Assembly: GCA_907165135.1 (NCBI GenBank)
Contig: OU015570.1
Coordinates: forward strand, 992,001-1,056,000
Direction of reading: 5' to 3'
Length of the DNA stretch: 64,000 bases
From: Oikopleura dioica
Lineage: Eukaryota; Animalia; Chordata
The notes beneath the pieces were generated by a model. It was not told where the DNA came from. It saw only the letters and a list, made by a program, of their open reading frames with translations, and did not search any database. Each line of letters starts with the position of its first letter. The stretch's first letter is position 1. Of this stretch, positions 40,468 to 52,522 are shown in pieces. Position numbers and translations under genes: made by a program.

Positions 40468-40770
40468 TCAAACAACCCGTTGCCATCAATAATGAAGAAT
40501 CTACAGAGTTTCAAAGAACCAAAAATTTTGTCCGGACAAAATTTTTTTGACTCTCGTCATGAAGTTAACACCGATTTTCTGGAACGCATAGAAGGGGAAA
40601 ATTAAATCAGATCAGATGAGATGCGACTCCGGGAATCAGATGACCCGATGACCTGCCGATGGCCTAAATTTGGAAAACAGCTGATGTCACCTGCTGACGA
40701 GAAATTGCTCAGAGGCGCCGACAGGCAACATAAATTTGGACGTCGCGGAGAAAAAACAAACAAATCGACG

Positions 40771-42465
40771 ATGAAAACAAAAATCCTTTTCATCCTCGCC
40801 CAAGCTTTCGCCGAACTATTCACCTTTGATAGAGAGAATGGTATCATCTTCTCCAAAAAAGAAGATATTTACGTCTTCGATGCAAGCGCACCAACACAAA
40901 TCCCGATAATGTTTGCAAGCCCATACCACCAGTTTAGAGAAAGCGTACAAGCCGACTGTGGGTACCCGGAGAGCGGAATCATCGGTAAAGAAAAGAATTT
41001 TTTCGACCTCGAACCTAGCGACAACTCAATGAAAACCATCTCTGAACATTGCGAAACAGCCTTCCGGGTCTTCGACGATATTCTTTTGGACATGATCGGA
41101 GCCGATCTTCTCTTCACAGATGCTTACGCCGAAAAACTCGACGAAATGGTAAACCAGAGACGAGTTAATACATTAAAGAAACGAACAGCGAGATCAACTC
41201 AATCCGCCAAACGAAACACGAGCAGGAAGAAGAGAGCCGTTGGAGTCGCCGCAGCTGCTGGAGTAACAGTAGCAGCAACAGGCATCTCTCTCGCATACAC
41301 AGGATATGTGGACGCAAAATCAAAGCAGCGCGATCAAGAGCTTCAATTTCAAATAGATGACAGCCGAAGAGCGATTTCTGAACTCTCCGAAAGCTTCGAA
41401 CTCAACACCGAAATGATTGGAGAACTTGCAAAACAACTGAAGAAATCACAATCCCCGATTATTGTGCGAGGAGGAATCGAGATATCTACTGACCAAATTA
41501 TGCAGAAAGACGTCCTCGACGGCAACCCGCAGAGTACAATCGAATATTTTGCAGCCTACAGCTCAAATTATGGAAAAGAAATGGTACGATCCCTGATGAC
41601 ACTAACTTACCACAGGCTCCCCTTGTATGGAACCTACATCGACACAATTCGCGCCAACTGCCTCGCCGTGCAAACAATTGATGACGAGAAAGTCAAAGAT
41701 GAATTCTGTCTCGGCTTTGCTTATCATTGCACCCGGTGGTACACCGATCTGAGATACATGGGCGTAGGAATTACCACTTTCGACCAAGCCGAGAACGCGG
41801 CGGCGACGACACCTCAAATGCTAAGGATCAAAGAAGTCATCATCAATCTTCACATCCGAATACCCAGGCTTCAACTGAAAGCGGAAAGATTCCAGGTGAT
41901 AAATCTGGGATATTTCCAGGACGCAGCAACAAGAAGAAGACTTGACATCCCGCAATTTCTCGTCCGAATGCCGTCCTCAGAAGTGTTATCAATGAACCCA
42001 GCGTTATGTCTGCGTTTTTCACCAACGTATGCATGTAGTAGTACTTCACTTCAGCCGGAGCAGTGTGGTGAGCAAGTTCTCTCAAGAAACTTAACGAGAT
42101 TCTGCAATTCGACACCCCTGGACCCGCAGAAATGCGGCCTCTTTGAGACAAATGATATGGCATTCGTCTCAATGCGACAACCTTCCCGAACGACCTTCTT
42201 TCACCACGCTCCGGTAATCGAGGTCAGCAAAATCGACTCCTTCAGAAAATCACCCTTCAACGGCGCCTTGAACTGCGGACAAGTGATACTGAAAATCAGC
42301 GCAGCAATAAAGAGTGAGACGACAGCAACTCGCATTAATTACATTGCTCCCGTAAAAATCCGCGTGACAAACGTCGAAGAAGAACGAGAGTTCGAAAATG
42401 AGCAGAGAGTTCAGAAAATGAAATCACAGAATGATGATAAATTCGGCACTGGAAGAACGACATAA
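40771..42465 (+). CDS. env: Env-like class I fusion glycoprotein ectodomain (orphaned from its gag-pol)
   Basis: Signal-like MKTKILFILAQAFA; furin site RKKR (41224-41235); fusion-peptide-like AVGVAAAAGVTVAATGISLAY; heptad repeat; Cys-rich domain. Frameshift near 42435 before the second heptad repeat. Confidence 0.8.
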   Translation: MKTKILFILAQAFAELFTFDRENGIIFSKKEDIYVFDASAPTQIPIMFASPYHQFRESVQADCGYPESGIIGKEKNFFDLEPSDNSMKTISEHCETAFRVFDDILLDMIGADLLFTDAYAEKLDEMVNQRRVNTLKKRTARSTQSAKRNTSRKKRAVGVAAAAGVTVAATGISLAYTGYVDAKSKQRDQELQFQIDDSRRAISELSESFELNTEMIGELAKQLKKSQSPIIVRGGIEISTDQIMQKDVLDGNPQSTIEYFAAYSSNYGKEMVRSLMTLTYHRLPLYGTYIDTIRANCLAVQTIDDEKVKDEFCLGFAYHCTRWYTDLRYMGVGITTFDQAENAAATTPQMLRIKEVIINLHIRIPRLQLKAERFQVINLGYFQDAATRRRLDIPQFLVRMPSSEVLSMNPALCLRFSPTYACSSTSLQPEQCGEQVLSRNLTRFCNSTPLDPQKCGLFETNDMAFVSMRQPSRTTFFHHAPVIEVSKIDSFRKSPFNGALNCGQVILKISAAIKSETTATRINYIAPVKIRVTNVEEEREFENEQRVQKMKSQNDDKFGTGRTT

Positions 42466-43405
42466 ACTCAACTCGACTCTTAACCTGATGTACGAAAGCG
42501 GTAAAGAAGAGATCCAACATCTCAAAAACCTTGTTCACGGATAGAAGGGGTTTCCTGGTTTGGTACGAATCCTGGTTTGGTACGAATCATGGTTTGGTAT
42601 GAATCCTGGTTTGGTACGAATTTCAAAATCATACCAAACCATGATCTGTACCAAACCAGGATTTGTACCAAACCAGGAAAATCGAGAGTCAAAAATCTCA
42701 AAAATCAAAAAATGAAATCATCGACTCTTATCAATTGTACTCGACCCCCCCCTTGGACCCAAAAATTTTTTTTACTGAGCAATTTGATTCAAATAAATAT
42801 GTCCGAAAATAAAACTTAACCATTTTTTATCAGTATATATTGCTTTAACTGCGAATATACTGTAAATTTATATAGTTTTTTTTTCATTTGTGCAGGAATA
42901 CTAATGTTCGATGAGTTGAAGAGTTTGCACACTCGCCGAGAATGCCGCGGATTGAGCCTTAATCTGCCTAAAGAGCCGGAAATGCGCCACACTATGAATA
43001 TAAGAAATCCTATTTTGGTTTGTGACAGCGATGTCGCGCCCGCCAGTGCGGAGCTCGTTGCTTTTCATCTGGCCGGATCGAGGTTGGATTAATTTAACCC
43101 TATCAAACTAAGTCAACAAAAATAATCAACAACCCACTCCTAGAATATCTTCCGTCCACTCGAAATTGAGCCTCAAGTCTCCGCATCCTCACAGTGCTTG
43201 ACATATGCCAAGTTCTTCGCTAGTTCTGGGTCAAAAGCTGGCAAGTCGTCAATTGAGGAGTACAACGCATTCGCCGAGTGGTTCTGAATATACTAATTAG
43301 AGTGTTTCTTACTTTCTCAGTTTCTTTCTGTTCAATAAAAAATCGCTTCTCTAGAATTATTTTACATGCACAGCCATTATTGTGCCTGTATGTTAGTTTC
43401 GCATC

Positions 43406-43973
43406 ATGTCGCAACTAAAAGCAGCTAGAACGCCTTGGATTATGAGTTCCGCCGAAAGGCGTTGGAAAATACAGAAACCAATGCAGGAAAGATTTATAAA
43501 AATTCTGAATTATTCTATTATTATTGCAGGATTATTTAATATCTATGAAAAGAAAATGCAATACACAAAACTGCTGGATGCATCTTATGAGTCTCCCGAG
43601 TTAATCGCCGTCCTGCCTTGTGCGGGGACAGGAGCAATCCGTTTCTATTTTAAAAGCTACCTGCAGTTGTTTGAATTTCACACTACTGCACGGCAGTTTC
43701 GCGATTGCGTTACCTCTCGGAAGAAAGGAAAAATTGATAAATCTATCATCAAAATTAAATGCAGCGCTTTATTATTTAATAATAATTTTTTTGTATATAT
43801 AATTACTCGAAAATATTATCAAAATTTTAAAGGAACAGTCCTTCTTGTCCGTTTACGATGTAAAGCGGCGAACCGAGGATGTCGAGCTAAAATCTGCCTA
43901 CGAATGATAACATCAAATCCAGATGATGAGGAATTTTGGAATTTAAGAAATTGGTCGATTTACAGTGCTACAG
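43406..43973 (+). CDS. MULE transposase N-terminal exons (FLYWCH/WRKY-like zinc finger), tentative
   Basis: After removing an AT-rich in-frame GA-AG intron (43728-43832): ...SRKKGTVLLVRLRCKAANRGCRAKICL...W. Confidence 0.5.
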
Positions 43974-44069
43974 GAATGTTCTTTTTATAATTTACTTACG
44001 AAATTTCTTTTGCGCAATTCGATGATAATTAGCTGTTGCTGAAAGGGAACATCTTCAGTGCTTCGATCA

Positions 44070-45030
44070 GTATATGTTTTGATATTCTTGGGAGAATTTT
44101 AGATTCGGAGATTAAGTGATTAGCTTTACCTTTTTGCACACATGAGGATTAAGGTCGGTTCAAGTTTCGTAAGCATTTCAGGCGTGAGTGTGTCTTTGAC
44201 CAAGTCGAAAATTTGCACCACCGTGTAAGGACCGAAGTTGTACTGTTTGGGGTGATTCCTTCTGCTCAAATTTGGTAGGACTCGATCGAGCAAGTCCAAA
44301 CCATTGGCGATCAGAATCAAACACGAGCCAGCCGAATCAAACAAGTCATACAAAACAGTTTCGCTCTTCGAATAGCGATTTTCGAGTTGAATTTTTCTAG
44401 TAGACTTTTGTAAATTTGATCTGCTTTTTTCACCGCCATGCAGTTGATAAAAACTGAAAAATATTTATAACCGAAATTTAATCATTGTATAAAAGATGAA
44501 GGATAGATCGATAATTAACATACTCTTACCCGTGTGTTCGTGGCCAGGCTCCTTAATCAAATCATTGATTGTAGCGGACTTTCCCGTGCCAGGAAATGTA
44601 CATCGAGTTGCCCTCTTCTTTCTTCAAACAGCCAGAAATGAATCCATTAATCGCTTTAAATTCGGCTTCTCGTCCGAGAATCTTATCCGGGAACTCCAAA
44701 TTTAGCGCCGCTTTGATTTTACCGAAGTTTTCGCAGTGGCATTTTTTTGATTTTCTTAACTGGAACGTCGTCGAAGAGGTTTCGTTTGACAGTTCGTTTT
44801 TGAGCCTCTGTAACTAGCCTGTTGTTCTCGATGTTGATTTTTGATGGCGATAACGGTGTTCTGGGTGAGGCGAGTCTCAGGCTGAAATTTAGGGTTATTC
44901 TCGCACTAAAACCTATTCATATAAAGCTCTATGGAGAAGTCAATATACCACTTTTTTTCGTCAAATTTACCTTTTTGATTTTATAGGAGTGCAATCTGGG
45001 GATTTTCGTTTCTTCGGCGATCCCCAAATA
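44070..45030 (-). pseudogene. CDC6: Captured CDC6 fragment with introns
   Basis: SP/TP-rich N-terminus with KRNLF; KAALNLEFPDKILGREAEF...NSMYIS/PGTGKS (Walker A frameshifted); KSETVLYDLF...LILIANGLDLLDRVLPNL...YNFGPYTVVQI...LMCAKR matches the Cdc6 signature order. Confidence 0.8.
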
Positions 45031-45400
45031 TCCGTCAAAACTCCTCCGAGAACATCTTTTTCAATCTCTGATTTCCTCAATACTGATCACGTTAGCTTCG
45101 GTCTCTTCTAGCTTATTTTGCAGAGCTTCCATCTGGTCAGAAAGCTTTTTGTTTTCTTCACTTTCTGTCTTGGCCTTTTCTTTCATCTCATCTCGTTCTC
45201 CGATGAGTATCGCCTTGGTATTCGCCGAGCTCGTTCACGTCGTTGTCTTTCTCAATGATCTGCTTGCTTAGAGCGTCGAATCTGTTGGTATACTCGTTGT
45301 TTTTTCCCAACTCGTTGATTTTGGCTTCCATTTCTTCTCTCTCATCATCCCACTGTTTTTTATTGTGCTTCTTGACGCGGTTCGTCCCTGAACATAATGA
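45030..45400 (-). pseudogene. Coiled-coil coding fragment upstream of the CDC6 fragment
   Basis: KQWDDEREEMEAKINELGKNNEYTNRFDALSKQIIEKD...; frameshifted. Confidence 0.4.
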
Positions 45401-45419
45401 TTAATTCACAATAAAGAAC

Positions 45420-47126
45420 ATCTGAAGATTGCCACTGTTCAAAAAAAGCGACAAAAAATTACATAACAAAGGAAAAAAGGGCTGAAAAAAAAGCGAAAAA
45501 AGCGACTGAAATCAAGGAAGACAACAATGTTTGCGAAGAAAAACCGACTGAAACCAAGCAAAAGAAAAACTTCTTCCAGAAAATTGCGCTGTTGAATTTG
45601 ACGTGCTCGAGGATGGTTATTACAATTGGAAATCGATTGTTAATATTCAAAAACGAAATCCAAAAAAAAGAAAACTGGAACGCGACGAGAAAAAGGAAGA
45701 AATGTCTTTGATGGATTTTGTCGAAGAGTTATCTAAAAACAACAGCGTTAAAAACAAATTGGCCAGCAACAGAAATTCATATTTCAAATTGAAATTGAAG
45801 AAAGAAAAGGTCGATGTTTGGGAGGGAGGTAACAATCTTGGAACAGTCAGATGGCGCTGCCTTCCTGCTGAAGACGAGTTCCAGCACAGCGCCTTCAAAA
45901 AATATATTATTTTCTCAACGAGACATGATCTTCAACAGCTTGGGAAAGCAAGACTTATAGCAATAGACGGCTGTTTTAGCATAATGGACGAGGTTAGAGC
46001 TGAACTTGGTCTTGGGCCATCAGCGCAGCTTGTTATTATTCAACAACCCTGCAAATTCACTGAGGACCAAAGCAAGGACAGCGTCTAAGCTAACTAAAAA
46101 ATATCTGTAAACACCATTTAACCGCGTGGGACAAATTGTACATTCCATTGTAGTTTAAGCGAAAACTTGAATAACTCGCGACTCGCAAAAAACGCTCTCA
46201 AGGATTTCTCCGCTGGCCGTATATACGCGATTCTTCCGGACAAAAAGGCGTCTACTTATCGAGAGTTTTTGGAAGGAATCAAAAGCGAGGCTGGCTTGGA
46301 AAACCTTGAGGGCGTCAGCATGGACATGGAAAGTGGTTATATCGAAGCCTTTCGTGAGGTTTTTGGACCCAAATTGGACATATTTTTCTGCATGTTTCAC
46401 ATGTGGCAAGGAAATTTTCTTAAATTATTACTCACCTTTATACAGTAGAAACATCAATATCAAGCTTCATGAATTGCTTATCTTCATAATTCCGAAAAGT
46501 CGAAATACTGTAGTCAGATGTGAATCGCAAGTAAACATTGTCTTGATCAATCTAAAGTTAAGTTTAGCAACTGTAGTATTTGATTTTTGTAAAGAAATTT
46601 ATTTTTTATGAAAATTATAAAGCAATGTCGAGATATGCTAAAAGCCCAAAGTGTGGGCTAGGTTCAGAATGGGAAGCATACGAAGCGAAAGAAGTGAAGC
46701 GCCTTATATATTCGCTCGGATATCTCCCGTTGGATAACTCGCTTGTTAACGAATGCTTCGCAGATCTCCTGAACCAAGAAATTTCAAAGCTTGAGGAGAG
46801 ACACCAGGGATGGCGAGTATTCTATGATTACGTGATCAAGAATTACGTCAGTTATGGGGGTAGATTCAGTCCAAAAGGAAAGTTTGATTAAGTTACAACT
46901 TTTCGATCATCAAAGATGTTAATTACCATTGTTATTATCCATTGTTATTTCATTTTCCAGCGTCGCTACTTGTTGATCAGCGATGGGTAGCAGGCCGAGT
47001 TGAGCACGCATCTCCGCAACTTTGAACAGTGTCGACTTGTGCTGCGTTGTGGTGTTGTTGGAAGAACTGGTCGATAATCGGTTGGAGTCGACCAGTCTCA
47101 ACTCGTTCATCGATGGAGAGTACTAA
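45420..47126 (+). CDS. MULE transposase catalytic core (multi-exon, probably defective at the C-terminus)
   Basis: IIFSTRHDLQQL...IAIDGCF; AILPDKKASTY...SMDMESG...AFREVFG...CMFHMWQ; LGYLPL...FYDYVIKNY. The third catalytic residue (RTNNxxE-type motif) was not found. Confidence 0.85.
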
Positions 47127-47339
47127 AACAGCTGTTTAAAAAAACAGACTTTCTAGCTTCGTATTTACCGCTATTATAGAGCTAGAAACGCTGTGTGAGT
47201 CGTCACAATCAGGCGTGTCGCTCGAGGTCAATCTCAATCTATCGTTTGTTTCCTGGATTTTTTCGAAATTTTGAATTTGCTCGCGCAAATATGCTCTGAT
47301 CGGCTGATTCGTCGGATTCGGACTCGGAGGAGTCTTTTT

Positions 47340-49192
47340 CGAATTCCACTTTTAGGTAGGTTCCGTTGTTACTAGAAGTCTGATTGAAGAAGAGAAGGCT
47401 GAAAATGACTTACATTTTTGGCTTTGACTTGATAATCTCCGTTGTTTCAGTAATAACGGTTGTTATTGTAGGTTTAATTTCTTTACTTTTCTTTAGCTTT
47501 TCTTCGAGATCTTCCACGTCTTGCTGGGAGACTTCAAGGTTTTCTTGCAATATTTCTTTTTCAAAATTAAGTTCGTTAATTTGGCGCGTGTATTTTTCTT
47601 CAATAGTTGAGAGCTGTCTTGCTTTTTCGTCGAGGGCTTCTTTCATTTTAACTTTTTCTTCTTTCAAGATAAGCTAAAAGTTCAATAAGAAAAAGAGGAT
47701 GTTGTCAGCAGATTTCTTTATTTAGCTATTGGAGTTTTAATTTTACCTGGTGGCTTTTCTCGAGCTCACATATCTTCGCCATTTCACGAGAGCCATTTCA
47801 CCCTGAGCGACAAGCAAGACATCTTTGAAAACTTGCTCGTGTCGTGCAAGATCGAGATACCAAAGATCACCAAGGCAAAGGTCGACCATGTTCCAGCTGA
47901 CACTTAGGTTCTTAGTGAGGTTTAATTTCTTTACTTTTCTTTAGCTTTTCTTTATTTAGCTATTGGAGTTTTAATTTTACCTGGTGGATTTTCTCGAGCT
48001 CACATATCTTCGCCAGCTGCTCGTTAAGCTGGCTAAGCTCAGCAGATTTCTTCGCGTTTTCACGTTCCTTTTCGCTGAGGAGATTGCTCTTTTCGGAAAT
48101 GATTTTTTGGAGATTGTCCTCCAATTAGACTGTTTGTTCTATCGCGAGGTGCAGTTGTTTTTCCATGTTGTCGAGCTCGTTTTTCATTGACTGCTCGTTT
48201 GATGCAGAAATGTCCCTAAAAAGATGTTAGTTTCTGAAGGTTCTTATTTTACGGGGGAATTGAATCACCCAAATAAATTCATAAAGTGAGAACTTAAAAG
48301 ATAGGCCTTCTAAATTGAAGCTTTGATGGTTCAAAATTTTATAGGTCAACACTTACTTGAGAGCTTCAAGCTCCATTTTGAGCTCCGAAACAGTCTGTCT
48401 GAGCTGTTGAGTTTGCTTTTTGGTGAGTTCGTTTTTGCTTCGTCCCTTTTTATTCAGCGCCTCGACGAGGGTATCTTTGTCCTTCAAAGTCTTCTTGGTG
48501 ACTTCGTGTTCGGTCATCATCTGTGCGATTGTACTTTTGAGGTCGTAGTTCTCTTTGTTGGTTTTGTTGAATTGAGCGATTTGGCCGCGCAATTTCGTGC
48601 ATTCCTTCTTCTCGAGCATGAGTTTTTCAGAAGAGCTGGTGACGTTTTTGTGGAAAGTTTCGTTAATTTCTCGAAGCGAGGCAATTTGAGATTTCAACTC
48701 GGCAACTTCCTTCGTTTCTGTTTTTTCTTTCTGATTCGCTTTTAAAGCCAGAGCGCGGATTTCGGCAGATAATCTGTCTTTCTCCGCGTATCCCAAGCTG
48801 ACGAGACTTTCAAGTTCGGCGATTTTGGATTCACTCTTCTTAGCTTCTTCTGTCAATGTTTTGGCTTTTATGGCTACGGAGAAGTAGTTTTTTTGCGCTT
48901 CCGAAAGATCGTTCTTAAATTTTTCCATAATTTTTCCGTCGAGCTCAATGTTTTTCAGCATCTTCTCGGCGTTTTCTTTTTCTTCTCTTGTTCGGATCAA
49001 TTCTTCGGCCAGCTTTGACCCCTTCTTTTCTACGTTTTCCATCTGATTTTGAACATTCTTTACTTTCACTTCTTCGATGTCTTGTTTCTGTTCGAGTACA
49101 GTCTTTTCAGCCAAGATTTTGAAGGTCTTCTGTCTCGTTCCATCCAACTCTCTCGTTTTTATATCTGAATTAAATGATAAGTATTTAAACAT
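47340..49192 (-). CDS. Multi-exon coiled-coil protein (unidentified)
   Basis: 279-aa E/K-rich heptad ORF (48353-49192) plus downstream exons; internal ~240-bp duplication (47713-47780 vs 47950-48015). Confidence 0.55.
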
Positions 49193-50852
49193 GGTTCTAA
49201 CAGATTATTCTCTTAAAAAGTCAATATTAAATACAAATATCAAACTAAAAAAAGATTGGGCTTGCAACAACAAAAAAGTCCTTGACAGAAACGAGAGCAT
49301 TACCAACAATAGCCTGGAGAATGAAAATAGCTTGCTCACCCAGGGTGGAGACACGAAAAAGCCAGCAAATGCCACCGCGCTGGTTACGAGATTATACAAC
49401 CATAAAATGGACAACTGGTCAAACGAAATGTCAATACTTGGCGGCGGTAAATTCCCACTCTACTCTAGTCAAGACCTATTGCAAAAATTCGTAAGAGGTA
49501 ATGCTCTACGTCGTCTGGCTGATGTTTACAAGCGACGAAGTGGTTGCATTTACGAGCTATCACAACTTGACATCGATATGGTTCAAAGACAACTGCGACG
49601 TTGCTGTAAAGATATATACTTGTCCAAGTCGATTGCTACTAACGCTCTATCAAATCAAGAAGAATTCAATGCATTTATGAATGATATTCCAAATGATATT
49701 CATAAAACAACATTGCAGAAAAGACTGGACTTTCGTGTCGAAAATGTTTATGAAAAACGAGAAAAGAAAGCTGCAAAAAAGGATGATGAAATCAAGGAAG
49801 AAAATCTAAGTGCGCAACGAAGAATTACGGATTATTTCAAATGTGCATCGGGCGCAGCGATCATACCTGAAAAAAATGATGAAATCAAGGAAGATCCAGA
49901 AGTCGTCATTCTCCATCCAGAGCCATCCAAAATCGAATCGAAGGCTGAAAATGATACTTTAACTTTATCTGCTGCTTTACAGAAACAGGTCAATAACCAT
50001 TTCAAAAAACGTGGACGAACTGCGAAAGCTAAGAATCAAGTTATTGAAGAAGTATATGGCTACGATTTGAGACTGGAAACATTTATGGAACTAAAACCTA
50101 AAGTTGGAATAAGCGATCGGGCCATTGACGTCTATAGTTCTATTCTTTTGAATGAAGCTGATGCCCTTGGAAAAAGAGTTGTTATCAAGTCGGCTTTATT
50201 CTATACACAACTCAACAATGGCTTACCTTCAATGGGAAGCGCCAACCCGTACAATGGTGATGAAATTTATATTCCAATCAATTGTTCAACTCGATGGCAT
50301 TGGATGTTGATGCGGGTCATTCCATCTGAACACAAAATGATTATTTACGACTCAAAACAACTCGAATCATTTTTTGAAGAAATGCATGGCGATTACAATG
50401 ACTGTTTCAAGACTATAGAGCGAAGTTTTTTACAGTCATATAAAGGTGTTCAATGGGAGAAAACAATTGGCTATTGCCCTCAACAAATCTCTGGCTCGAA
50501 TAATTGTGGAATAATACTGTGTTTGGCAATGAGATCGTTAATTTTCCAAGGCGAATTCAAGGATATATCAATTGAACCAAGAAAGAATATGCGAAAAAAA
50601 ATTGCTGAGGAAATTATTGCAAAAAGACTCCTTTTTAATTTTTACAAGTCAACTGTAATCAAAAAAGCTTCAAATATATCTCACCTCTTCGAAATCAATT
50701 ATTGCAGCAGCCGTTTGAATACATCTTCTAATGAACATGTCTACTTTGTATCGAAGCTCGTTCTCGTTGAGCCTTTTTTCCTAAGAAAGACCTTTATCTC
50801 GGTAAGGCAAAGCTTTCTCCTACCTTTGCATATGAAACGAAGACGTTTTTGA
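49191..50852 (+). CDS. Ulp1/C48 SUMO-protease-family protein
   Basis: IDVYSSIL...SALFYTQL...IYIPIN...WHWMLM...IIYDS...PQQ...NNCGIILC gives an intact H-D-(Q)-C set; intronless 591-codon frame. Confidence 0.88.
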
Positions 50853-50859
50853 AGTAGAT

Positions 50860-51600
50860 TTCGTAAAGCTGTCTGTCCAACACATCGCTGTCAGCGCCCA
50901 AGAATCCCTCCATTGCAGCGATTTTGGACTTTTTACTGAGAGAGACTTTTTGAGGCTTCGTCGTGAAACCAAGAGACTTCTTTTGCAAACGGCTTTGAAT
51001 GAGCTTCGGCAGTCCAGTGAACGCGCCCGAACAGATAAAGAGAATATCAGAAGTGTCCACTAAAACCATACGATTAGGGGTAGGGTTTGGACTAAGATAA
51101 CGGGCTTCTACTTCTTTTGGAGAATTCGAGCCTTGTTTTAGGAGTCTAACAATTTGCTTTACCTTGATTATTTCCCGCTGCAGGTTTTTTAAAAGGATCT
51201 TTGACAGAAACAACCGACCCTTCCAGCAATTTGAGCAGTCCTTGCTGAACACCCTCGCCAGAAACATCGCGGAAGTTACCGCCGGATAGCTTTCTCGCTG
51301 CAATTTTATCTATCTCGTCCAAGTAAACGATACCACGCTGGGCCTTTTCTACATTTCCTCCAGCGTTTTGCAAAAGCTTTTGAATGACCGATTCGATATC
51401 TTCGCCGACGTAGCCTGCTTGAGTTAGGGCTGTGCAGTCGGCGACGGCGTAGGGGACGTCTAGATATTTTGCAAGCGTCTAAAAGTGGGCTTCTGATAGT
51501 TTTTTATACATTTGTTGTCGTTTTACCTGGACTAGATGTGTTTTTCCAGAGCCAGTTGGGCCCATGATTAAAATATTAGACTTGTCAATGAGAACACTCG
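50860..51600 (-). pseudogene. CLPX: Captured mitochondrial ClpX AAA+ module with two introns (51479-51526, 51132-51162)
   Basis: Spliced: IDKSNILIMGPTGSGKTHLVQ|[32 protein letters not shown]...[10 protein letters not shown]...[18 protein letters not shown]...[13 protein letters not shown]. Lacks both termini. Confidence 0.93.
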
Positions 51601-52284
51601 CAATTTCTCCACGCTAATCGACGGGTCATCGAAGTCGCGAACCCAAAAGCCCCGGATGCGCAGGACGTCTCGAATGTTTCGCATCACGAGTTCAAGTCTT
51701 TCTTTCGTTCTTCCTCTTTCGTTCTTCCAGAATTCAAAAGCTTAAATTTTTTGGTTGACCGTAGAAGATCACCGTACTGAGATTAACTTAGATTTAAAAA
51801 AAAATAATAATTTACAGTTTCAAAGCACAAAACATTAAGAAAAAATCAGTTAAAAATAAATTCAAGTCTTCTTTATTCATTCTTCTCGATTTCCTTAGCT
51901 TTCTCAAAAAAATCTTCCCCGACCCAGTATGAAAAATCTCGTCAAAAACGGTTGACCAATCACAAATAGGCGCGCGCAATTTCAAACTATTGCAAGATTG
52001 AACTCGTGAAGTATTTTTTATAATATTCTGAGAAATAAAGTCTATCTCCTGAAAAATAATTTCAAATATTGAGGCCGAAGGGGGGGTCGAGCACAATTGA
52101 TAAGAGTCGATGATTTCATTTTTTGATTTTTGAGATTTTGGACTCTCGATTTTCCTGGTTTGGTACAAATCCTGGTTTGGTACAGATCATGGTTTGGTAT
52201 GATTTCGGAATTCGTACCAAACCAGGATTCATACCAAACCATGATTCGTACCAAACCAGGATTCGTACCAAACCAGGAAACGCC

Positions 52285-52522
52285 CGGATAGAAAGCACGA
52301 ATAATGGGCTGGCTCACAGGAGTATCAACCCTTGTGGTCGTCATCATCATACTTGGAATCATCTTCAGATGCAAAAAATCCGACTGCAATGCTACTCCCC
52401 GAATCGTCCTCCAACCACAATACGAACAGCCACAGCAACAGCCCCAACACCAGGAGAATCAACAATCCAACCAACTTCTTCAAGCAGACAATTTTTCAAA
52501 CAGAACAGAATCAACTCTTTGA
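52285..52522 (+). pseudogene. env: Env C-terminus (TM helix + Gln-rich tail) separated by the MULE
   Basis: KARIMGWLTGVSTLVVVIIILGIIFRCKK is in frame with HLKNLVHG on the left of the insertion once one TSD copy is removed. Confidence 0.8.

Follow-up and report, generated by a model that had tools for sequence, protein, structure and literature searches.

A Mutator-type transposon of Oikopleura dioica with antisense host-gene cargo and a probable transposase-Ulp1 fusion gene

The subject of this analysis is a 9.7-kb element at positions 42547-52284 of a 64-kb stretch of the genome of the chordate Oikopleura dioica (the whole stretch, C3:992001-1056000, is called the window). Coordinates without a contig label are window positions, C1-C5 are contigs of the window's own genome (64.28 Mb in 19 contigs were searched), and L048, L049 and L052 are labels of relatives of the element. 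The element is a single DNA transposon of Mutator type, and alignment to its own genome reveals that about 45% of it is copied host DNA. Very probably it belongs to a lineage-specific cut-and-paste family of the Mutator superfamily, has a single split transposase-Ulp1 gene, and holds antisense cargo in its tolerant parts. An earlier note on this DNA had described a Mutator-like element that carries a transposase, separate Ulp1 protease and coiled-coil genes, and fragments of two host genes, CDC6 and CLPX. The outline of the element and the origin of the two fragments hold, whereas the gene content and the inventory of cargo have to be revised.

Boundaries, relatives and superfamily

The element ends in long terminal inverted repeats (TIRs) and lies between two perfect copies of a 9-bp target-site duplication (TSD):

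42538-42546, no strand: left TSD copy, 9 bp, CGGATAGAA; present once at the paralogous empty site
42547-42767, + strand: left TIR, 221 nt
52064-52284, - strand: right TIR, 221 nt
52285-52293, no strand: right TSD copy, 9 bp, CGGATAGAA

The two TIR arms are 95% complementary over 221 nt. The outer ~130 nt of each TIR are made up of a 17-bp unit in four direct and three inverted copies, and this part folds back as a hairpin (-53 kcal/mol, z -14 against shuffled sequences). A paralogous retroelement copy at C3:1810361-1811143 represents the empty site; compared at the flanks alone, it is 93% identical on the left and 97% on the right, and both flanks overlap there on exactly one copy of the 9-bp target. 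Because the flanks meet on a single target, the element is a true insertion with a 9-bp TSD and not a pair of independent miniature inverted-repeat transposable elements (MITEs), an objection that the earlier note had raised against its own description of one TIR- and TSD-bounded element.

The same note had proposed a genome-wide search with the TIR and a comparison of cargo among copies. This search yielded three more complete pairs of ends with TSDs:

C5:7468089-7470888: family member, 2.8 kb, own perfect 9-bp TSD AGGGTTTAA
C4:2135230-2138099: family member, 2.87 kb, own perfect 9-bp TSD GGAAATTGC
C3:2844827-2855187: sister element, 10.4 kb, own perfect 9-bp TSD TTTCTGTTG

The TSD is therefore perfect and 9 bp long in all four independent insertions, this element included. 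The sister element shares ~50-56% protein identity and the same exon order with the element but carries different cargo, from at least eight loci. It also contains a nested MITE of ~495 bp that has many copies in the genome.

The + strand encodes the blocks of a DDE transposase, with the motifs D...D...CxxH...TNNxxExxN. The IS256 family is the bacterial relative of Mutator. When the core exon of a relative was modeled with AlphaFold (predicted local distance difference test score, pLDDT, 72.5), the best fold match was the transposase of ISCth4, a bacterial insertion sequence of the IS256 family (PDB 6xg8; E 6e-4, 13% identity, TM-score 0.42 on the query), which outranked generic integrase cores. 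A range of 8-11 bp is given for the TSDs of Mutator elements, typically 9 bp (PMC6446971), and this element and its three relatives have 9 bp. Mutator TIRs are tens to hundreds of bp long, and those of this element measure 221 nt. Taken together, the 9-bp TSD, the long TIRs, the motif pattern and the fold match of the model are the grounds on which we file the element under the Mutator superfamily. A Zisupton/KDZ or ISL3-like class was considered and rejected, given the 9-bp TSD in four insertions and the IS256 fold match; the TSD of Zisupton/KDZ elements is 8 bp.

A predicted transposase-Ulp1 gene with four GA-AG introns

The transposase and the supposed Ulp1 gene most likely form one five-exon gene, which would encode a fusion protein of ~1,041 residues and contain four GA-AG introns. 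The predicted parts, all on the + strand, are:

43406-43973, +: exon 1, N-terminal Cys-rich region, probably DNA-binding; no Pfam match, homologous in the sister; ratio of non-synonymous to synonymous rates (dN/dS) 0.27
43974-45579, +: predicted intron 1, GA-AG, 1606 nt; first cargo slot
45580-46076, +: exon 2, first catalytic Asp (LIAIDGCF)
46077-46202, +: predicted intron 2, GA-AG, 126 nt; absent from the sister element
46203-46410, +: exon 3, second catalytic Asp (VSMDMESG) and CxxH motif (CMFH)
46411-46622, +: predicted intron 3, GA-AG, 212 nt; same position and same junction residue in the sister
46623-46877, +: exon 4, ending in ...RFSPK
46878-49254, +: predicted intron 4, GA-AG, 2377 nt; second cargo slot; interrupts the DDE catalytic domain
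49255-50852, +: exon 5, third catalytic block (TNNSLENEN), linker, and Peptidase_C48 at about 50259-50624

The content of exon 5 lies in an open frame of 591 codons (49077-50852), the "Ulp1" frame of the earlier note. Its N-terminal part contains TNNSLENEN, followed by K-x-P-L...LL..F.R, so the frame carries the third catalytic block of the transposase and is hardly the separate intact gene that it had been taken for. Peptidase_C48 (PF02902) is found in the same frame at 4e-7 (30.5 bits against a cut-off of 20.7), and alignment to human SENP5 shows that the catalytic His, Asp and Cys and the oxyanion Gln are retained (HW, YDS, CG and Q, respectively); judged by these residues, the domain is a cysteine protease of the Ulp1/SENP type. 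A homologous-protein search with the 591-residue frame gave no match, a blank whose meaning is limited by the length filter of the search. A profile made from the family alignment matched nothing meaningful among PDB sequences.

All four junctions (43973|45580, 46076|46203, 46410|46623 and 46877|49255) have the form AG|GA...AG. Joined by script, the exons run from an ATG (43406) to a stop codon (50852) and make 3,126 nt and 1,041 codons without an internal stop. The sister element agrees with this model at several points. Junction 2 matches its uninterrupted sequence (QSK|DFSAGRIYAIL versus QTKDFCSGRVYALL), and for introns 3 and 4 it has phase-compatible GA-AG sites, placed at the same codons (E|AFKRYAK and SPK|DW). 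Once these two introns are removed, its frame is open for 521 codons until a frameshift in an A-run; this single frameshift could be a Nanopore homopolymer error. The GA donor context of introns 1, 3 and 4 is identical in the two elements, between which silent sites are saturated. In the related copy L048, the coding parts of exons 1 and 2 lie within one open frame. An earlier alternative, in which the boundary of exon 4 is mutated and a repeat remnant breaks the transposase, was replaced by the GA-AG intron model, under which the frame is kept.

The third block reads TNNSVENEN in the sister, TNNAVECIN in the third copy L049 and TNNALENEN in the marine-metagenome relative L052. At four further loci the exon with this block lies 1.2-3 kb downstream of the second-Asp exon on the same strand. 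In all these copies, a long spacer thus separates the parts of the catalytic triad. Between this element and the sister, the block-wise proportions of non-synonymous differences (pN, 0.31-0.44) are far below those of synonymous differences (pS, 0.68-0.90), and dN/dS is 0.12-0.27 where computable. This pattern in the aligned frames points to purifying selection, at the level of the family, on every coding block, including exon 1 and the protease.

GA-AG introns are unusually frequent in O. dioica (PMC7072748). The predicted transposase introns are GA-AG in 4/4 cases, with an AG|GAAAGT-like donor; the visible host introns of CDC6 and CLPX are GT-AG in 5/5. Within intron 2, a 63-bp stretch (46124-46186) recurs at 95-97% identity in at least 15 places of the genome, and each of these matches has an inverted partial partner about 470 bp away; the stretch resembles one end of a MITE of ~530 bp. 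Intron 2 is flanked by the direct repeat CAAGGA. Because it is bounded by this repeat and absent from the sister, it may have been gained through insertion.

Captured host DNA and its history

The cargo consists of at least seven captured pieces from seven loci, including at least six host genes, and not of two host fragments as first described. Their parents were identified at 84-97% identity:

42931-43282, - strand: piece A, HECT-domain E3 ligase fragment in the 5' leader; 96% to C1:10038782-10039134; parent matches HECT at 6e-17
44021-45069, - strand: piece B, 5' part of CDC6 with introns, in intron 1; 84-95%
45069-45364, - strand: piece C, fragment of a long coiled-coil gene with two internal deletions; 93-97% to C2:3612422-3612920
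46948-49150, - strand: piece D, 3' two-thirds of a coiled-coil gene, in blocks 46948-47781 and 47952-49150; 92-93% to C5:12746500-12748512
47787-47919, - strand: piece E, 133 bp of a cytoplasmic dynein heavy chain gene, nested in piece D; 96% to C1:10657998-10658130; parent matches DHC_N2 at 2.5e-122
50705-50906, no strand: piece F, left part of the C2:9667195-9667811 segment (gene not identified); 92-96% for F and H
50907-51610, - strand: piece G, part of CLPX that runs from Walker A to beyond sensor 1 and includes two introns; 95% to C2:11622341-11623044
51612-51716, no strand: piece H, right part of the C2:9667195-9667811 segment; 92-96%

Introns 1 and 4 contain most of this material, and the non-coding leader and trailer contain the rest. 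A fragmentary copy at C3:216861-217368 has the subterminal region up to 52153 in common with the element.

The CDC6 and CLPX fragments match the human proteins at 2e-7 and 2e-35, respectively. A complete resident CLPX is located at C2:11621961-11623233, and a resident CDC6, whose four exons read through without a stop, at C1:13860824-13862171; because complete resident loci exist elsewhere, the fragments are extra copies, and the earlier note's worry that they might be the sole CDC6 and CLPX loci falls away. A search with Pfam Cdc6_C over the whole genome gave no match; it missed even the resident CDC6 and is uninformative. Both copies keep the introns of their parents, which indicates capture at the DNA level, as the earlier note had argued. 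Gaps relative to the parents in pieces B and C had suggested an origin from cDNA, but the gaps are deletions inside exons and the introns are present; the cargo is not a retrocopy. The coiled-coil frame at 48353-49192 (- strand, 279 codons), previously listed as a gene of the element, is a copied piece of the C5:12746500-12748512 gene at 92-93% identity.

The sense of the parent gene lies on the - strand in all six pieces that can be oriented (A, B, C, D, E and G), so that not only CDC6 and CLPX, for which this had been noticed before, but every orientable piece is antisense to the transposase. A two-sided binomial test gives 0.03 for this bias, although the pieces are not all independent. Antisense frames of host-like type also occupy the same slots, with different cargo, in the sister, in the third copy L049 and in a metagenome contig of 7.7 kb. 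Among the frames in these relatives are coiled-coil frames, weak polymerase-delta-like and MOZ-like matches (sister), a WD-repeat match and a kinesin fragment.

The pieces bear traces of successive captures. A fragmentary copy at C3:216861-217807 keeps the F-middle-H segment whole; in the window, CLPX stands exactly in place of the 311 bp in its middle. Because it replaces the middle of the older F-H capture, CLPX is a later, nested one. A 64-bp duplication of piece D flanks the dynein piece E, captured pieces abut within 0-5 bp, and several in-exon deletions are bounded by short direct repeats. The abutting pieces, the nested replacement and the 64-bp duplication may be the marks of template switching in repair synthesis. 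The C3:216861-217807 fragment itself is a 947-bp part of the right end of the element (inner TIR, H, middle, F) and lies inside another copy of the retroelement family that hosts the element. It is flanked by a target duplication of ~100 bp and not by a 9-bp TSD, and looks like filler DNA from repair rather than a product of transposition.

The pieces differ in their divergence from the parents. CDC6 shows 22 synonymous and 30 non-synonymous changes (dN/dS 0.37), introns that are 15% diverged, five internal deletions, a frameshift in the P-loop and loss of the start codon. Coiled-coil piece D has 24 synonymous and 21 non-synonymous changes, with its frame open for 279 codons. The CLPX piece has 11 synonymous changes and 1 non-synonymous change relative to the resident, introns 13% diverged, and exons without a frameshift. 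Had neutral change in the copy produced half of its divergence, ~17 non-synonymous changes should be present; with one seen, the copy can hardly have evolved neutrally since capture. The sequenced animal is ~3.6% heterozygous (PMC8008620). The simplest reading of these counts is a very recent capture of CLPX from an allele that differed from the reference allele before the capture. Alternatively, the source may be a lost gametologue: to judge by their sizes, C2, with the CLPX parent, and C3, with the element, may be the X- and Y-specific scaffolds.

We propose the following explanation. The element inserted, with a 9-bp duplication, into the 3' part of an env-like region of a long terminal repeat (LTR) retroelement. 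Its five-exon gene would yield a fusion protein in which a DDE transposase core is preceded by a Cys-rich N-terminal part and followed by a cysteine protease of the Ulp1/SENP type. Host genomic stretches, introns included, were copied into parts that tolerate them: the leader at the 5' end, introns 1 and 4, and the trailer at the 3' end. Template switching while double-strand breaks or gaps were repaired is the probable route. Only antisense-oriented pieces persist, likely because splice or polyadenylation signals of sense-oriented host DNA would wreck the transposase transcript.

Alternative readings and known systems

Several points weigh against this explanation. In Pfam searches the MULE domain (PF10551) stays at 19-23.5 bits, under its cut-off of 27.6 (weak E-values of 1.5e-3 for this element and 7.5e-5 for a relative), whereas DDE_Tnp_ISL3 passes its own (1.7e-8, 34.5 bits against 23 bits). 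Pfam detected no FLYWCH/WRKY or SWIM zinc finger, and exon 1 has a conserved Cys-rich block. A phmmer search with the core exon of a relative against 1.8 billion representatives returned six short metagenome fragments and nothing else, so the placement rests on motifs, fold and TSD length. The splice model was partly picked for frame compatibility, and its open frame is not a fully independent test. None of the indexed RNA runs contained the stretch; in four raw-read RNA runs compared with 43350-49349 at 97% likeness, 1-5 reads were found in each and none came from the element, all of them lying at 44021-44081 and continuing into resident CDC6 sequence. This blank gives no support for a transcript, antisense RNA or small RNAs; it is not proof of silence. 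Finally, the genome contains this copy only once, and the natural stop codon after ...RLLF, which the sister keeps, is missing here. That last pair of facts, together with the lack of detected RNA, would fit a reading in which the family works as described and this copy is a dead relic no longer able to make transposase. Such a state is a serious possibility, though we lean slightly the other way. The frame now runs on for 68 residues into captured piece F, and intron 2 is an extra insertion with a repeat remnant; yet all five exons are open over 1,041 codons, both domains keep their catalytic residues, and the element has TIRs matched at 95% and a perfect TSD.

The layout first described, a Pack-MULE with a separate transposase, independent intact Ulp1 protease and coiled-coil genes, and two host fragments, is unlikely. 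It could appeal to an in-frame ATG shortly upstream of the conserved part of the 591-codon frame, to the separate Ulp1 frame of Kaonashi-type MULEs in plants, and to the coiled-coil frame, which is open for 279 codons with a dN/dS of 0.20 against its parent. Separate genes would, however, divide the DDE triad between two proteins; the Ulp1 exon of the sister has no ATG ahead of the conserved block; the coiled-coil frame copies only part of a larger gene, and the homology does not take in the start of that gene; and there are at least seven captured pieces, not two. We also regard it as improbable that the cargo is functional, in that antisense sequences within the pre-mRNA of the transposase control essential host genes, or protect the element against silencing by small RNAs because such silencing would also strike those genes. 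The uniform antisense orientation (6/6 here, similar in relatives) would fit such a role, as would the enrichment in housekeeping genes (CDC6, CLPX and dynein; weak polymerase-delta-like and MOZ-like matches in the sister) and the 11:1 ratio of synonymous to non-synonymous changes in the CLPX exons; in maize, an epigenetic conflict over captured fragments has been proposed (bioRxiv 10.1101/777037). On the other hand, no element-derived reads were found in the four RNA runs, CDC6 is visibly decaying through its deletions, frameshift and dN/dS of 0.37, splicing constraints alone predict the orientation bias, and a recent capture from a diverged allele would account for the CLPX pattern, heterozygosity in the species being ~3.6% (PMC8008620). 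Equally doubtful is the wider idea that a coding, possibly autonomous chordate Mutator uses its own GA-AG introns as cargo bays from which antisense pre-mRNA modulates host genes or deters silencing. It is extremely improbable that the stretch is not one transposon but a patchwork of gene fragments bracketed by unrelated short inverted-repeat elements or an assembly join. The region is repeat-rich, the assembly Nanopore-based (PMC8008620), and solo ends of the family are present in the genome, but the flanks are joined on a single 9-bp target at the paralogous empty site, and the sister has an identical internal order between ends of the same kind.

With the plant Pack-MULEs (gene-carrying Mutator-like elements) of rice, maize and Arabidopsis the element shares Mutator-type ends, a 9-bp TSD and several intron-containing host fragments that are rearranged and truncated. 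Plant Pack-MULEs are non-autonomous, whereas this element has a complete-looking transposase frame, keeps most of its cargo in its own introns and in antisense, and has a chordate host; because it codes for a transposase (the 1,041-codon frame), the name Pack-MULE, in its strict, non-autonomous sense, does not apply to it. Pack-TIRs, TIR transposons with copied host sequence, are known from animals, with 370 of them in 100 animal genomes, and a template-switching origin was proposed for them (Tan et al., 2021; PMC8277862). Those Pack-TIRs are short, non-coding carriers, unlike this element, and no tunicate is mentioned in the main text of that paper. The earlier note had cited Pack-MULEs from plants and had no chordate case of this combination of cargo; gene capture of this kind is little described in chordates, but animal Pack-type capture is already published (PMC8277862). 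Mutator elements are scarce in chordates according to a survey that lists one Ciona savignyi sequence (PMC6446971), and we found no literature that joins Oikopleura and MULEs.

A C48 protease travels with the Mutator transposase in Ulp1-bearing MULEs (plant Kaonashi-type elements, and clusters in diatoms and oomycetes), as it does here. In Kaonashi-type plant MULEs, Ulp1 is a separate frame; in this element it apparently forms the C-terminal part of the transposase protein, its exon being joined to the others across a long intron filled with cargo. Diatom proteins combine MULE, Transposase_mut and Peptidase_C48 (Atlas protein clusters, score 0.75), and clusters with MULE and C48 also occur in oomycetes; because of the diatom proteins, the fusion of MULE and C48 is in itself probably no novelty. 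Animal MULEs of the Phantom and Foldback-like groups have TSDs of 8-10 bp (PMC6446971, table) and, like this element, long, internally repetitive, hairpin-forming ends, but no detectable sequence similarity to them was found, and FLYWCH and SWIM fingers were not detected here.

Gene capture by Mutator elements is a plant paradigm. Here the location of the cargo in introns lets capture go together with an apparently intact transposase, and a compact chordate genome with such a family offers a system for asking how host DNA enters transposons. Nested captures, 64-bp duplications and precise replacements are preserved for the study of copying. Further questions are why only antisense pieces survive and whether transposon genes prefer the GA-AG introns of O. 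dioica. The family is also candidate material for an animal MULE-based genetic tool, while the practical importance of this single copy is modest.

The insertion lies in the 3' part of the env-like region of an LTR retroelement (40621-42465 and 52304-52522, both + strand). This region has a 614-codon frame with an RKKR site followed by a Gly/Ala-rich hydrophobic stretch, and a membrane-anchor-like frame (MGWLTGVSTLVVVIIILGIIF...) directly past the insertion. Three loci (C1:16972222-16975923, C4:7644540-7646418 and C5:12173143-12175023) give identical scores for the second-Asp and third-block exons; they probably represent nearly identical copies within a family of this design that is younger and more distantly related. 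For two ends of the element's family, at C3:1840073 and C3:1865747, the flank of one is the reverse complement of the other's for at least 40 bp, which points to a large inverted duplication (palindrome) of about 25 kb on the repeat-rich contig C3.

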